Below are positions 16,621-42,399 of a stretch of 64,000 bases of DNA, one piece after another (within the stretch, counting starts at the first letter, position 1; the number at the start of each line of letters is the position of its first letter). The stretch comes from Amphiscolops sp. MND2022. Lineage: Eukaryota. Both the position numbers and the translations under genes were made by a program. The notes under the pieces were generated by a model. That model had not been told where the DNA came from and did not search any database. It worked only from the letters and a program-made list of their open reading frames with translations. The DNA lies in the NCBI GenBank assembly GCA_964187785.1, contig OZ076413.1:37944001-38008000 (forward strand). The letters are read 5' to 3'.

Positions 16621-17782
16621 GAGTCATTGGTTTACCTATATTAAAGATGGTTTTATAAACATTGTTGTGAAGATTGCAATGGATCAATTTCACTTGCTAG
16701 ATGTGATGTTTCAGTTAATGTCGGAAAACACCAGTATTGATTCAATGATGATTAGTATTGATTTCTGAATGATTTGAGTTCATTTACGAGAATTCAAATC
16801 ATATACTTCCAATTTAAAAATTTTACTTACTGGCATGATCAGTGAGCAATTAGATCAAATCATCAAAGTAACGGTCGAAAAGTTTGCTTACTGACATGAT
16901 CAGTTAGCACTTAGTTCAAATGAGCTTATGAAAAGTAGGTTAGTTTTTTCTTTGAAGAAAAGAATATTTTTCATCTCATTTCATTTCATTTCAAATCTGT
17001 TAGAGGTTTGATGTTGAAACTGAATTTGAAAGTGTTCAAAGATTATGAAAAACTTTTAGAAAGAATAACAAAGCATTGGAAGTTTTGACAAGTAGTGGTG
17101 TTTTGTTTGTTTGCGGAAAACAGCCAGAAAGTGCGTGAAATGGGTTGTCCTGAATGCAGAAGGAAACAAGGTTCATTCCCGAGAAAAACTGAATTTCCCA
17201 GAAATACCCACATATCTCATCTTCAAGGACCTACATAATGTGGGGTTATCGAAAGAAACGACCCCAGTTAACAAGGAAGTTCAAAATTAATTCAACTCAG
17301 AAAATTTCCAGGACTCTAAACTACATTCTGCTATCTCTGATAAAAACAAAAAGATTAATTTTGAACAATTTCATAATTTTAAATTATTCCAAGTTTAGTA
17401 TTAGTTCACGATAAGTATTTTCATCCCCTGGGAGTGTGCTTGCAAGTTGTTTCTTGTAGAGAATAGAGCTTTGCAGAGAAAAGAGAATTATATTCAGAGA
17501 GTAATCTCAATGAACAATCAACGTGGTGTCATTACGAGTAATCCAATGCGTTAATGTATTAGTTGAAGTGAAATAACATCATCATCGAATGATGATTGGT
17601 ATTGACTTCTAGGAGATTCTTCTCACAAAAACGGGTGAAATTTTGCCTACTGTCATGATCAGAACTGTTTAAATTACCAAATCTTCAGCCAATTAAACTC
17701 CCGACTATATACTAATTCACTTAACGCAATTTGTTGAACAGTGCAAGATTGAGAAGTACTGAAGTCCCATTGATTACAAGTG

Positions 17783-17842
17783 ATCGGTGGCAAAGATGGT
17801 AGAATAGATCTTTAGGACTGAGTTCGATTCCTGGTAGGGACG
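17783..17842 (+). repeat. tRNA-derived SINE-like head
   Basis: A-box-like TGGCAAAGATGGTAGA and B-box GAGTTCGATTCC, but no complete cloverleaf. Confidence 0.5.
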
Positions 17843-18382
17843 TTTTTTAGAATTGAATTTTTGGAATAAAAAATCAACTACTATATAAACGTACGGATAT
17901 AGTAGTAACACATACATATCCAAAAGAGCATATTTGTTCTGGGAAAATCTGAGAAAAGGTCCTCGAGTTAAAGTTGATATCCGTTTTTCGTTGAGAGTAA
18001 AAAAATATTTTAGCGAACAATAATCAAATTAGCCTTTCTCCTCATGACACCTTCAAGGGTTTCACTATTCATTTTGTTCACCAAAACACATCATGTAATA
18101 TCAAATAAGTACAAATCGAGAAATGCAAGTAGTTAAATATTTTCAATATTTTCTACATTAAATGAACAATATTCAAAAAATTCAACTAATTCAATAATTT
18201 CAATTTTTTTACATTAAATGAACAATTTTCAACCAGGGTCAGTTAATGCGGTAACAAATGAATTTGAATAGGTCTATAGACCATCATATCTAACATTTTG
18301 AAATGACGTTCGACAGGCATTCAAGGAGGAACAGTCAGACGCGTTCAAGTTGTCTTGTTATGAAGGAAATTGGGTACTCCTG

Positions 18383-18895
18383 ACTAAGTAGGGTCCCTAT
18401 ATTGTAAGTGTGGTCCCTGCATGTTTTGTCAGAATATTATTTAGAACGTTATCAGCTATGTTCACATAACTCTAGTTCCCTAAATGCAAGAGCGAAGTGA
18501 AGCGGAGCGACGTGCCATATGGCCATGCCTCAATGTTGCTACTGGGCGAAAGGAGCAAAGCGACCGAGCCATACAACAAAAATGCTAACCTCTTCAAATC
18601 AAGTTCCGAAACATTACATGTTGTTCAAATCAGCAGAATTCAATTTAGTAGCATTTAGTTCTGTTACAGCCAATATGTATAAAACTTGAATTGAAAAGGT
18701 TAGCAGATTTGTTCTATAGCTCGGTTGCTTCGCCAAGTAGCAACATTGAGGCATGGCCATATGGCACGTCGCTCCGCATCGCTCCGCTCCGCTCCTGCAT
18801 TTAGGGCAAGAGGGGCATGTGATAATAGCTACGTTTTAATAATTATTCCGATAAAATATGCAGGGACCACACTAACATTATAGACCACACTTAGT
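18383..18895. mobile_element. Foldback/MITE with ~210-bp inverted arms
   Basis: 18383-18597 and ~18690-18895 are reverse complements (e.g. GCGACGTGCCATATGGCCATGCCTCAATGTTGCTAC versus GTAGCAACATTGAGGCATGGCCATATGGCACGTCGC), with a ~90-bp spacer. Confidence 0.8.
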
Positions 18896-38730: not shown

Positions 38731-39209
38731 GTGTCCATTCAGTAAACAGAAACCACTGCATGCAGAAATCAAAATTAGATTCTAATTTCAAAAGAACTGC
38801 GCTTCAGAAGTAACGGCGTGAAATAATGCTTGGAACACTAGATCCAGCCATGTCAATTTAAAATGATACCTTTCCACTAAAAGGAAATGAATTTTTTAAT
38901 TCAGATGAGTTGATGGATCTTTTTTGTTCCCCTCATTTGTCCTACCACAACACCCTATGTTATTTGCTCTTATGTGGGGTCGTTTCTGATAATCCCCCAG
39001 TATTTTGATACAATTAGGCGGTGAAGAGAAGTTATTATTGATTTGATAGTAACAACCAATCAAATTGCAGTATTTCTAACTGTAACTGCAACTGAAACTT
39101 ATCGCTGATAGTGGTGGGGAAGTAAAATTTCTGCGCTTGCTGTGGGGGGAAGGGGGGGGGGCGTGTAATTAACAGAAAAGGTCCCTTACGTTATTTGGGA
39201 ATCCTTCGA

Positions 39210-39667
39210 AAATCTCGTCGTCTCTGATTAGCTTCGCATAACCATTTGAAGTTCGACTATAAGTTGCGTTTTTAAACCAATTGTCAATTTGATGAACTGT
39301 GGCTTTTGATTAGTTTTCAAAGTAAGTCAACTACCTTCACGAGAGAAAACAACTATCAAGCCATATGAAAGAAATGTTTTACTTTTGTTAACTGGCATGA
39401 ATTGATTACTGGTATGATCTGCGAAAAAATTCAGTTCCAAAAAATCTCGTCATCTCAGATTAGCTTCGCATAACAATTTGAAGTTCGACTTTAAAGTTGC
39501 GTTTTTAAACCAATTGTCAATTTGGTGTATTGTGGCTTTTGATTAATTTCCAAAGTAAGTGAACTACCTTCACGAGAGAAAACAACTATCAAGCCAGATG
39601 AAAGAAATGTTTTACTTTTGTTGACTGGCATGATTTGATTACTGGTATGATCTGCGAATAAATTCAG
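39210..39667 (+). repeat. ~230-bp tandem duplication
   Basis: 39210-39435 and ~39440-39667 are about 90% identical, each ending in two ACTGG(C/T)ATGA motifs. Confidence 0.85.
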
Positions 39668-42399
39668 ATTCAAATGAAGCATCAAAATTTGAACCACGAT
39701 CGGGCCCAAAAAGTTTTCATTTGACTCTAATTCATTCAATAATCACTAATTGCTAATCATTTCTGATTTTTTTCTTATGATTTTCCAAATATCCTACGGA
39801 AATTTTATTGCGTTAATATTTCACTGTCGTCGCCAAATTTTATCCAGCTGCTTTAAAGAATCATGAAAGTTTTGGCGGCAATTTCTTGCCGCGAAGTTCT
39901 GCAAGTTTCAATATGATATGCATCAGTTCTAATTTTAAATGCAGCTGAGGTCTCAACAATTGTGTCGCCATTTTGTTGCAAAGTAAATTCATTCACAATG
40001 TAAACAGCAAACTAGCGTCATCGTCAGCGTCCAATTTGAGAAGCGGTGATTAATTCAGATAAGTAGTAGTAGAAATCAATGTGTGAATACAGCGTGATCG
40101 TGTCCGTAAAAGAAGTGGGAAATATTTTCAAATTTATTTGCTGTAGTGGGAAATGCAGTGGAATTCTTCAAGATTTACCACCGGAACCTCACTGAATTTT
40201 CTAGGTTTTATAAAAAACGTTACGCTGCATGCAGGCTTGCAGCATGTGAAAAGTTCCTGCAGTCTCAACTAGGAATTCAGTATATATTTTTCAATAAATT
40301 TGTATAGATTTTCAAACGTATATATAAGTGTCCAATGTCTCAGCATAATGGGGATGATGGCGCAGTTGATAATTCCTGTGGGTATTCGAAGCTAAACGTG
40401 TTTATTAGTACCTCCGGATTGTTCCCCGCCAACATCCCACTGGCTAGGCAATTCTTTGCAGACAACCCTCAGAAGATTCCCTTCATATCAAAAGACATCG
40501 TCGTTGTTCCTCTTAACGACAATAGGAAAGGCCCATATCGAAGGACCACTGCACCACTGCGTCTGTTTTGATGTCCAATTTTCGATCTTACCAAGTCTCG
40601 GATAAAGTCAGATAAAAATAAATTGGTGAAATACACATGAAATGAATTCATGTGGAATTAATTTTTAAACCTAAGTTCAGTAATTGAAATTGAATTCAAG
40701 TTATATGAATTTTGTTTACAGGCATGGTCAGGTTTTGTCATTGTGAAAATTCAAATTCAAACGATGAATGAATGAGTTTTGATTACTGGTATGATCAGAT
40801 TGAATTTGAATTCACATGATTACATGTGAGTTTATTCGCAGATCTTACCAGTAATCCAATCTAATCTTGCCAGTGTTTCAAAAAGAACTTCATTTTGATT
40901 TCAAATCACTTAGAATTCAATACTAATCATCATTCAATACTGATGTTCTATTGATGTTCAATACTGGCATCAACTAAAACATCAAGCGTTAAAGTGACAC
41001 ATTATATCAACACACGCGTGTTAATACATGTAAAATATTACGTTGCCATGTTTAACATTTTGCGTATATTCAATCTGATCACACCAGCCATCAAAATTCA
41101 TTTATTCGCTTCTGATGCAAAATAAGTTCAGATGATTGAAAGTTTTCCATCCTATCGCTGTGAAAAGGAAAAACAACGATCAACTACTGATTTCTTTTTT
41201 CATATCAAAAAAGGATGCAGTGGATCTTCATATATGCCTTCCTATCTCTCTGAAAGGGAATAACAACGATCAAGAACTGATTTCTTTTATCACATCAAAA
41301 TGGGATGCAGTAGCGCAGTGGACCTCCAATTATGCCTTCGGATCGCTGTGAAGTGGAACGATGTCTTCTGCCAAATCGATATGGGGGTATTACAGAGTCT
41401 GTATAGAGTCACCGAGCAGTGCGTATGTTAGGAGATCGATCCGGCGGTAGACAACGGTGCTAGATTCACTTCATACCCAAATGAAGTTTCAACTGCGCCA
41501 CCATCCCCAACATGACGTTGCATTGCAAACATATTTAAACTCACACAACTTTATCTTTCGTCGTTCTGACTGTTCAACTTGAATTGTATAAAATTTAGTA
41601 ATTGAATTGTATAATGTTTTCAACAGTTCTAAGTAACGGTTGCATTTTAAACAGCATTACAATCACGCTTGTATTACTACAAATCTTCACTCCAATGCGT
41701 TAATGTTTCAGTAATCACAAAAATCCAAACCATATTGTTTATGTTTAAAAACAACATAAACATGAACGCGCTGCTTGACGTTCACTTCGTTCTATCGGAA
41801 GGTGCTATTTGGTTTGTGTGTGTGTGGTTGGGGCTCTGTGGGTCATTCGTATCAAGGTGTAACGGATGGGTTGTGGGGGGTGTATATGTGGTGTATATGT
41901 GCATACAATTAGTATCACTGTAGCTATTCAAAAAGTTGGTTTTCAAGCCTTTTAGCTTCAAATAACACGAAACTGAAATTACTTTCATTTAACATAAAAA
42001 CAAAACTGATAACCCGGTAAAAATTTTTATTTGTAATTTCGTGACAACTTAAACTTTCTCGTCTACAATTTTTGTTTTGTGAAACTGTTTTCCATCAATT
42101 TTGTCGGGCACAAATAACTGCTGAGATTACAAATCTCAACGAAAAACTACTTTTCCCAGTATAATCTAGTTTTAAAGAGGCTCTCAGTTAGGGGATCACA
42201 TAGTGTCGCCCATAACAAGACCCACGCCGAGAACGTGGCCTCTGAAGGATCTCAAAAATTGTAAATACATCTAACTAACAAAACTTCAACCCAGTGGTGT
42301 GTTGGAAAATGAACACAAGGTCCAGTTTATGTTTAAACATTTTGCTTACTGGCATGATCAGTAAGCAATTAGTTCAAATGATTAAACTCTAAATTAACA

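Follow-up and report, generated by a model that had tools for sequence, protein, structure and literature searches.

Positions 16263-42935 (26,673 bp) of the DNA analyzed here, a 64,000-nucleotide stretch of the Amphiscolops sp. MND2022 genome (GenBank assembly GCA_964187785.1, contig OZ076413.1, positions 37,944,001 to 38,008,000 of the forward strand; hereafter the window), very probably represent a full-length but dead member of a family of large cut-and-paste DNA transposons with copies at multiple loci, which encodes a RAG1-fold transposase together with its own SET gene and probable JmjC and reader genes. The four genes are arranged divergently, as had been described in a first-pass annotation of this DNA, with a C2H2 zinc finger (ZF)/JmjC-like gene (19682..22861) and a gene referred to as ORF-X (for open reading frame, ORF; 23538..24759) on the minus strand, and a multi-exon SET gene (gene 3; 31000..33245, the start being approximate) and the transposase gene (gene 4; 33434..37070) on the plus strand. 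All four are broken in the window by frameshifts, stops or an insertion, and this copy of the element is dead. The annotation had considered all of the genes to be spliced, which is the case for the multi-exon JmjC and SET genes, but ORF-X is intronless and gene 4 has a single intron.

The span of the element was assigned based on the agreement of both homology boundaries, the inverted repeats, the subterminal repeat clusters and the AC flanks. The left homology boundary falls at the same base in the window and in two paralogous loci, L007 and L008, and the right boundary at the same base in the window, L006 (twice) and L011, with unrelated sequence outside in both cases. Terminal inverted repeats (TIRs) of ~25 bp, which are imperfect, begin at these bases, the left one reading 5'-CATTACGATACATATCCCCGC... 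(16263..16290, plus strand) and the right one ...GCGGGACATGTATCGCAATG-3' (42908..42935, minus strand). The termini are 5'-CATTRCGATACAT...ATG-3', and an ungapped comparison of the left end (CATTACGATACATATCCCC...) with the reverse complement of the right end (CATTGCGATACATGTCCC...) gave 16 matches over 18 positions; they are of the 5'-CA...TG-3' type (CATTAC...GCAATG), the TIR beginning CATTRCG. Five copies of TTGACTRAATTACGC form a left subterminal cluster (16460..16613, plus strand) and another five, in both orientations, a right one (42518..42718). This sequence was matched 11 times in the window compared with 4.4 expected, and 10 of the matches belong to these two clusters, one of which is near each end. 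The dinucleotide AC precedes the left TIR (16261..16262) and follows the right TIR (42936..42937) in both complete copies, those of the window and of ctg182112, the flanks of which are not otherwise shared. We consider these dinucleotides to be a putative 2-bp target-site duplication and infer that the element moved by a cut-and-paste process generating a duplication of that length. The interval first delimited, 16690-42381, was a single bounded unit as proposed, but the true ends are 427 bp further left and 554 bp further right. A right terminus at ~40.3 kb, where L004 and L008 stop, was rejected in favor of 42935, the former being at different bases in the two loci (47 bp apart) and the latter common to the window, L006 and L011. 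Long direct terminal repeats were also rejected, as 42332-42386 and the similar 16813-16867 have only a private motif (described below) and the subterminal repeats in common.

The exon-sized ORFs of gene 4, of ORF-X and of the ZF exon have relatives at 41-92% identity, nearly all of them in ENA records, which form 27 clusters in the case of gene 4, 10 in that of the ZF exon and 21 in that of ORF-X. Every locus examined for these relatives was on a different contig within ENA assembly ERZ25074608, to which the window also belongs. A second full copy, of 23.7 kb, was found on ctg182112 (L007 and L011) and is colinear with 16258-42937 at 76-92% identity. Besides this copy there are at least six paralogous loci in which the gene order is kept or which are internally deleted or rearranged. 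These included the following: L003 and L005 (ctg182976), with the 5' part of the JmjC gene, ORF-X, SET and gene 4 in the window order and an inserted long terminal repeat (LTR) element; L009 (ctg185624), with JmjC, ORF-X and SET; L008 (ctg182787), with the left end, JmjC and ORF-X and an internal deletion of 31172-38686; L004 (ctg181401), which is rearranged with internal tandem duplications; and L006 (ctg184268), which is rearranged with the ZF exon relocated. L001 (ctg177947) is the other haplotype of the window locus itself, 97-99% identical and without 26903-32841 (5.9 kb). The first-pass annotation had proposed a single mobile element of at least 25 kb, to be checked by asking whether its genes and motif co-occur in the same order at unlinked loci and by aligning the copies to define ends and target-site duplications. 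This proposal was supported by the recurrence of the same genes in the same order on several contigs with the private motif at orthologous places, by the common termini with TIRs, by the AC flanks of two full copies with otherwise unrelated surroundings, and by the internally deleted derivatives.

The private motif, which that annotation had described as marking the interval, was confirmed to be confined to the element. The 14-base sequence TTACTGGCATGATC was matched 28 times in the window when up to two mismatches were allowed, all within 16827..42359, compared with an expectation of 0.51 from shuffled sequence, and none of 100 shuffles reached 28. These copies occupy introns and spacers, where many are tandemly arrayed (20889-21207, 22239-22453, 31938-32213, 34643-34758 and 39209-39674; the array periods include 55, 63, 162, 45 and 233 bp), and have a conserved core of ~20 nucleotides, aATTTTGyTTACTGGCATGATC, in unrelated flanking contexts. 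Each paralogous copy has the motif at orthologous places, whereas neither the flanks of the copies nor the locus of a distant relative contains it. A different set of tandem arrays lies beside the genes themselves: a 31-bp array of 6.5 units with a TGACnnnGTCA-type core is directly upstream of the ZF-JmjC gene (22869..23066, minus strand), and 34-bp arrays are directly upstream of gene 4 (33203..33407, plus strand) and downstream of it (37258..37481, plus strand), where in L006 the relocated ZF exon follows. The first of these arrays is inverted relative to the other two, and we infer that the 31/34-bp arrays, with their TGACnnnGTCA core, are a common, duplicated promoter module of the ZF-JmjC and transposase genes. 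The element in the window also contains a tandem duplication of 2 x ~2994 bp (24193..30189), ~99% identical, which repeats the 5' portion of ORF-X together with the sequence upstream of it.

Several smaller structural features were apparent in individual copies. The deletion in L001 removes one of the 3-kb tandem duplicates and most of the SET gene, and constitutes a heterozygous structural variant inside the element. In L006, the last ~1 kb of the element and ~1.3 kb of its flank are tandemly duplicated with a 2.26-kb period (L006 14950-17871), and the 31/34-bp array and ZF exon sit downstream of gene 4, not upstream of the JmjC exons. The extra JmjC-exon-like fragment at L007 16979-17155 (52% amino acid identity), which is located ~0.9 kb outside the left terminus of the ctg182112 copy, suggests that a second, older element remnant lies beside that copy.

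Comparison with other copies indicated that the ancestral form of gene 4 was one long ORF with a single intron (~34553-34759) that holds motif repeats. In the window this gene is interrupted by six or more frameshifts, by a stop at 35996-35998 and by a 515-bp insertion at 36347-36861 resembling a miniature inverted-repeat transposable element (MITE), the last of which is restricted to the window lineage and absent in L004, L006 and L011. Sequence searches gave little indication of the function of the gene: neither its pieces in the window nor the longer ORFs of other copies had a Pfam or PDB sequence match save a weak BRCT, eight long relatives (846-1301 amino acids) had no Pfam match at E <= 0.01 with the same exception, and a profile of the family searched against PDB sequences returned nothing at E <= 10. 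An exhaustive search with a 245-amino-acid ORF (L006:7665-8399) as query identified 94 relatives, including intact unnamed proteins of 978-1301 amino acids with 33-42% identity from metagenome and Logan contigs. Intact members of the family are ~1000-1300 amino acids in length, and the family hidden Markov model (HMM) matches the gene 4 pieces of the window colinearly. One intact relative, P0044 (1125 amino acids), was similar to gene 4 with an E-value of 1.5e-21 and 39% identity.

An AlphaFold (AF2) model of P0044, built from an alignment of 66 sequences, had a mean predicted local distance difference test score (pLDDT) of 82.9 and a predicted template modeling score (pTM) of 0.74. Its top 49 PDB fold matches were all to the mouse RAG1 core, the Helicoverpa Transib transposase (HzTransib) or amphioxus RAG1L (BbRAGL), with E-values of 5e-9 to 1e-3, and the 48 that were below 1e-3 aligned over 635-777 columns; the P-element transposase came next. 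Candidate catalytic residues in a D..D..E arrangement are near-invariant in the family (P0044 numbering: D330/D334 in 33 of 35 sequences, D420 in 56 of 56 and E749/E752 in 32 of 33), with D330/D334 located on the first strand, D420 following the fourth and E749/E752 at the beginning of a helix ~330 residues further on. Also near-invariant are H746 and a CPD..H...R..E motif, and P0044 has C529-x-C531..H536 and H742-x3-H746, of which only C531 (40 of 57), H536 (56 of 57) and H746 (31 of 33) are well conserved. The GE-x-GE-x-S motif around the last acidic residue of the family resembles the E962 region of RAG1. Sub-threshold BRCT_2 matches recurred near the C-terminus of five proteins (E 3e-4 to 0.017), and residues 856-952 of the P0044 model form a beta-alpha-beta-beta-alpha-beta-alpha unit; a BRCT domain at the C-terminus of the transposase is probable. 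Since structure prediction, unlike the sequence searches, resolved gene 4, the designation RAG1-like-BRCT survives at the level of the predicted fold, where the P0044 model and the D..D..E residues support a RAG1-type transposase, but the profiles gave it no Pfam or PDB sequence support and the BRCT matches are weak.

The SET assignment of gene 3 was more direct. The SET exon in the window exceeded the Pfam threshold (E 3.2e-6, 27.9 bits versus a cut-off of 22.4) and its best PDB match was KMT5A, its closest solved relative, in agreement with the PR-Set7 class named in the first-pass annotation. The three-ORF structure of the gene is kept in L011 and the P0044 contig; in the window the gene has an in-frame stop at 31619-31621, and there are PTSD repeats at the C-terminus. 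SET genes adjoin distant gene 4 relatives in two other samples (ERZ21818094 and ERR15087781), and because each of these two relatives has such a neighbor the SET-transposase linkage is old. The SET protein neighboring the gene 4 relative in L010 had a Pfam E-value of 2e-11, and 14 of its 15 PDB matches at E <= 0.01 were KMT5A/SETD8 (E 8e-7 and weaker), the 15th being an uncharacterised SET-domain protein. No relative of the N-terminal half of gene 3 was detectable in Pfam or the PDB, the corresponding part of the L010 SET protein is not similar to it, and its initial description as YR-like (tyrosine recombinase) is unsupported.

The rough exons of the ZF-JmjC gene are 22454-22861 and 22021-22173 (both ZF), 21389-21860, 20658-20744 (WHQD, as HxD), 20269-20583 (third His) and 19682-20095. 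The gene is frameshifted near 21650-21770 relative to L007, which has a 166-amino-acid ORF over the region of the 21389-21860 exon. Its similarity to zf-C2H2 (E 5.7e-5) was accompanied by a sub-threshold match to Cupin_8 (E 0.048), and one exon had sub-threshold matches to KDM7/PHF8/KDM2A (E 0.16-1.5) at the strand of the third metal-binding His. A 29-amino-acid mini-exon reads WHQDFSAT...GEK, in which HxD and GEK were recognized by eye. Judged from sequence, the product probably combines C2H2 ZFs with a JmjC domain of minimal form (HxD...H). The last exon (19682-20095, minus strand) also had a sub-threshold match to the Tudor of Crb2 (Tudor_3 E 0.041); the Tudors of Crb2 and 53BP1 read H4K20 methylation.

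ORF-X is divided in the window among three frames (24316-24759, 23918-24334 and 23538-23858), and alignment with the relatives P0135 and P0131 identified it as a single intronless ORF of ~430 amino acids in other copies of the gene. No Pfam match was found for it. The AF2 model was poor overall (pLDDT 51) and contained two confident small beta-barrels, not a propeller, on the basis of which we tentatively assigned ORF-X as a predicted methyl-lysine reader of Tudor/chromo-like (Royal family) type. Its similarity to an ORF in L010 (o452) was marginal (E 0.005-0.013). An intact, stand-alone ORF-X paralogue of 431 amino acids was identified on ctg185847 (L012 10001-11296), with 41% identity to the L008 ORF and 36-67% to the three pieces in the window. 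The 10-kb neighborhood of this paralogue had no other element gene, private-motif homology, Pfam match or match to the gene 4 family HMM, and the paralogue may be either the host gene from which the cargo was derived or a copy that has been domesticated.

In view of the number of components assigned to the element, it is important to set out the results that weigh against this assignment or parts of it. There was no sequence-level match behind the link to RAG1, which was drawn from one predicted structure, of the relative P0044, and the 2-bp duplication was deduced from two copies, both with AC. No intact copy was seen in the source genome, where the longest gene 4 ORF is 361 amino acids. The SET segments of the copies in that genome read LNYRPD and EEICFNY / EEKCFDY, with Tyr replacing the His of NH(S/C) (window 32930-32983 and 33003-33060; L006 5435-5600), whereas the L010 SET keeps VNHA and EELRYDY. 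For the JmjC domain, which the first-pass annotation had also called, the KDM7/PHF8/KDM2A matches of one exon and the HxD mini-exon are in favor, but all of the matches are sub-threshold and neither the HxD exon nor the L007 ORF over the 21389-21860 region had a PDB match. The matches of the ORF-X barrels to PWWP, 53BP1 Tudor and MRG chromo domains did not reach significance (E 0.06-0.4). The JmjC and ORF-X genes were not seen beside the distant gene 4 relatives and, because of this absence and the stand-alone ORF-X paralogue, both may be late, lineage-specific captures.

Some of these results would be expected if the interval were a chance composite of independent units copied together, namely a transposon with SET and transposase genes and a ZF-JmjC/ORF-X module of host or other transposon origin, with the chromatin genes being passive cargo or passenger pseudogenes. 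Such an origin would fit the distant relatives at L010 and on the P0044 contig, which have only SET beside the transposase within ~10 kb, the intact ORF-X paralogue with no other element gene within that distance, the different placement of the ZF exon in L006, and the large internal deletions and duplications that differ between copies. We nevertheless find it doubtful, given that the private motif is spread over both halves and both ends of the element, that the order of JmjC, ORF-X and SET between the same termini is constant in two full and three partial copies, and that the ZF-JmjC and transposase genes have the same array directly upstream. Weaker evidence in the same direction comes from the ratio of non-synonymous to synonymous substitution rates (dN/dS), which, as for the transposase, does not reach 1 in the JmjC and ORF-X exons. 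For all four genes the values between copies were 0.46-0.75, biased downward by the choice of aligned segments with tblastn, which is a further point on the unfavorable side, and they are compatible with past constraint plus neutral decay. That the interval is instead no transposon at all, and represents a segmentally duplicated host cluster of chromatin regulators and a domesticated RAG1-fold gene in a repeat-rich region, is in our judgment highly improbable. All of the copies are degenerate, many with local tandem duplications, only two complete copies were informative as to flanks, and an empty site, sought as a paralogous uninterrupted copy of the flanks in the DNA examined, was not found. 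A host cluster would not, however, be expected to have sharp, identical breakpoints at both ends of independent copies that coincide with inverted terminal repeats, unrelated flanks with direct AC repeats around both full copies, or at least eight dispersed loci with 78-92% identity, and the window copy apparently sits between an LTR-like piece and the internal part plus matching piece of an LTR retrotransposon.

The remaining alternative concerns not whether the element is a transposon but to which superfamily it belongs. It may be a member of a catalogued superfamily of CACTA-Mirage-Chapaev (CMC) type (animal EnSpm/CACTA, Mirage or Chapaev in Repbase), that is, an ordinary CACTA-like transposon with captured genes which matched RAG1 only since RAG1 and Transib are the sole solved structures of the clade, and we rate this a serious contender, if one somewhat short of even. 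The CA...TG termini, subterminal repeats, large size, multiple ORFs and 2-bp duplication are closer to Mirage/CACTA than to Transib, whose duplication is 5 bp and whose ends are CACWGTG, and no CMC transposase structure was among the PDB matches. These same features match the description of the wider CACTA-Mirage-Chapaev-Transib (CMCT) clade (PMC12730594). The lack of any Pfam match at E <= 0.01 other than the weak BRCT in the eight long relatives, and hence of any to CACTA-type transposase families, argues in the other direction, as does the fold alignment spanning the whole RAG1 core.

Returning to the assignment of the element as a transposon with a RAG1-fold transposase, its resemblances to the Transib, RAG-like (RAGL) and RAG1 systems are in the fold of the family, which matches the RAG1 core, HzTransib and BbRAG1L over ~650-770 columns, in the D..D..(long insertion)..E arrangement with a conserved His just before the E, and in being a TIR-bounded cut-and-paste element. 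The differences are ~10% sequence identity with no Pfam RAG1 or PDB sequence match, AC flanks of 2 bp and a TIR start of CATTRCGATACAT / CATTRCG in place of a 5-bp duplication and the CACWGTG heptamer, no recognized ORF like RAG2 (Kelch propeller) as in RAGL elements, a probable C-terminal BRCT, linked SET, JmjC-like and ORF-X genes, and a length of 26.7 kb. Because of its CA...TG termini and 2-bp duplication the element fits the CMCT clade by published description, and not Transib or RAGL proper. This clade comprises EnSpm/CACTA, Mirage, Chapaev, Transib, Plavaka and ESTA, as well as Lanisha, with CA...TG termini and 2-5-bp duplications, its transposases are related to RAG1 by structure-based comparison, and TET/JBP genes are carried by fungal CMCT and KDZ elements (Kojima 2025, PMC12730594). 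The present element shares with it the termini, a putative duplication within the 2-5-bp range and a cargo of predicted epigenetic enzymes, but that cargo would be histone-directed (SET, JmjC) and in the fungal members is DNA-base-directed, and of the C(2)C / H(3-4)H motifs the gene 4 family has a partly recognizable form (CxC..H, one well-conserved His). The host is a further difference, the BEL/Pao-type elements around the unit suggesting that it is probably a metazoan.

SET histone methyltransferases have also been reported inside HarbingerS and Phytophthora MuDR families (cited in PMC12730594). As in those families and SETMAR, a SET gene is here physically tied to the transposase of a DNA transposon, but the transposase superfamily is another one and the SET is KMT5A/PR-Set7-like, a separate gene, and accompanied by JmjC-like and reader-like genes. 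A parallel of a different kind is VANC of the Arabidopsis VANDAL elements, which binds short motifs that have built up in tandem within the non-coding DNA of those elements and lifts silencing there (Hosaka 2017, PMC5735166). Common to VANDAL (MuDR) elements and this one are a private short motif amplified in the non-coding DNA of the element and an encoded non-transposase protein as the candidate binder, but VANC is of no known enzyme class and acts via loss of DNA methylation, whereas the candidate effectors here are a ZF-JmjC demethylase, SET and a reader-like protein. Our search of the accessible literature found no reported element in which SET, JmjC-like and reader-like genes accompany a RAG1-fold transposase, and no description of the transposase family. 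The novelty originally claimed for a RAG1-type element with SET and JmjC should be qualified, as SET genes in DNA transposons have already been reported and the termini and 2-bp duplication fit the broader CMCT clade. The lineage of the transposase has a real chance of being new at the superfamily level.

We propose that an intact element would function as follows. The transposase would bind the TIRs and subterminal repeats, leading to excision and integration with a 2-bp duplication, and the 31/34-bp arrays upstream of its gene and the ZF-JmjC gene would act as a shared promoter module. The ~20-bp private motif arrays in introns and spacers would serve as a landing pad for an element-encoded DNA binder, for which the likeliest candidate would be the ZF-JmjC protein. 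Once bound, this protein could bring the demethylase, and possibly the SET writer and ORF-X reader, to the element's own copies, with the outcome that heterochromatin silencing is countered or that excision is coupled to H4K20me/BRCT-type break signaling. By analogy with VANDAL/VANC, the element may in this manner edit its own chromatin through the motif arrays. More speculatively, the joint presence of a KMT5A-like SET, a PHF8/KDM7-like JmjC, Tudor-like barrels and BRCT would point to the biology of H4K20 methylation and break signaling. The window copy cannot run this proposed mechanism because all four of its genes are disrupted. A broader proposition, to which we give limited credence, is that gene 4 belongs to an unnamed deep RAG1/Transib-fold lineage that is widespread in environmental eukaryotes and ancestrally SET-linked, and which here has a writer-eraser-reader-BRCT toolkit addressed by ~20-bp arrays, making it an animal-type, enzyme-based counterpart of VANC possibly tied to H4K20me/BRCT double-strand-break signaling.

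The transposon relatives of RAG1 are central to the origin of V(D)J recombination, and a large, unannotated RAG1-fold family with ~10% identity, different ends and a probable BRCT tail would widen the set of comparators for that origin. Known epigenetic modifiers encoded by transposons concern DNA methylation (TET/JBP, VANC) and sparsely SET; the mechanism above, if true, would be a direct example of a transposon that targets histone-modifying enzymes to its own copies. Intact natural members of the family exist (P0044 and P0102 among others). Units of 24-27 kb with spliced chromatin genes are prone to be mis-annotated as host gene clusters.

The window as a whole is AT-rich, repeat-dense eukaryotic DNA, and the transposon debris that the first-pass annotation had noted around the element was confirmed. 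No known RNA family or tRNA was found. Two decayed LTR retrotransposons (43131-49630, plus strand, and 7483-13490, minus strand) account for ORFs at 43.1-49.6 kb and 7.5-13.5 kb, and we take both to be BEL/Pao-like from the DUF5641 ORF of a related insertion in L003. Similar LTR-like pieces (14595-14980 and 49816-50199, 86-88% similar) lie on both sides of the element and for that reason suggest that it inserted within an old LTR retrotransposon, namely the right-hand one, in its leader. An ORF for a non-LTR-type reverse transcriptase begins at 63.5 kb (63492-63998, plus strand; RVT_1 E 1.9e-18) and runs off the end of the window, and a run of 200 N at 56530-56729 is an assembly gap or masked stretch. 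The MITE-like repeat inserted in gene 4 is ~0.5-0.65 kb with ~50-bp inverted ends and was also found at 4493-5146 and ~56814-57226. A further dispersed repeat family occurs at 5629-6470, 39781-40216, 57317-58640 and 60286-60758; its fragment in the 3' non-coding region of the element adjoins an insertion of 100 bp (40068-40166) restricted to the window lineage.

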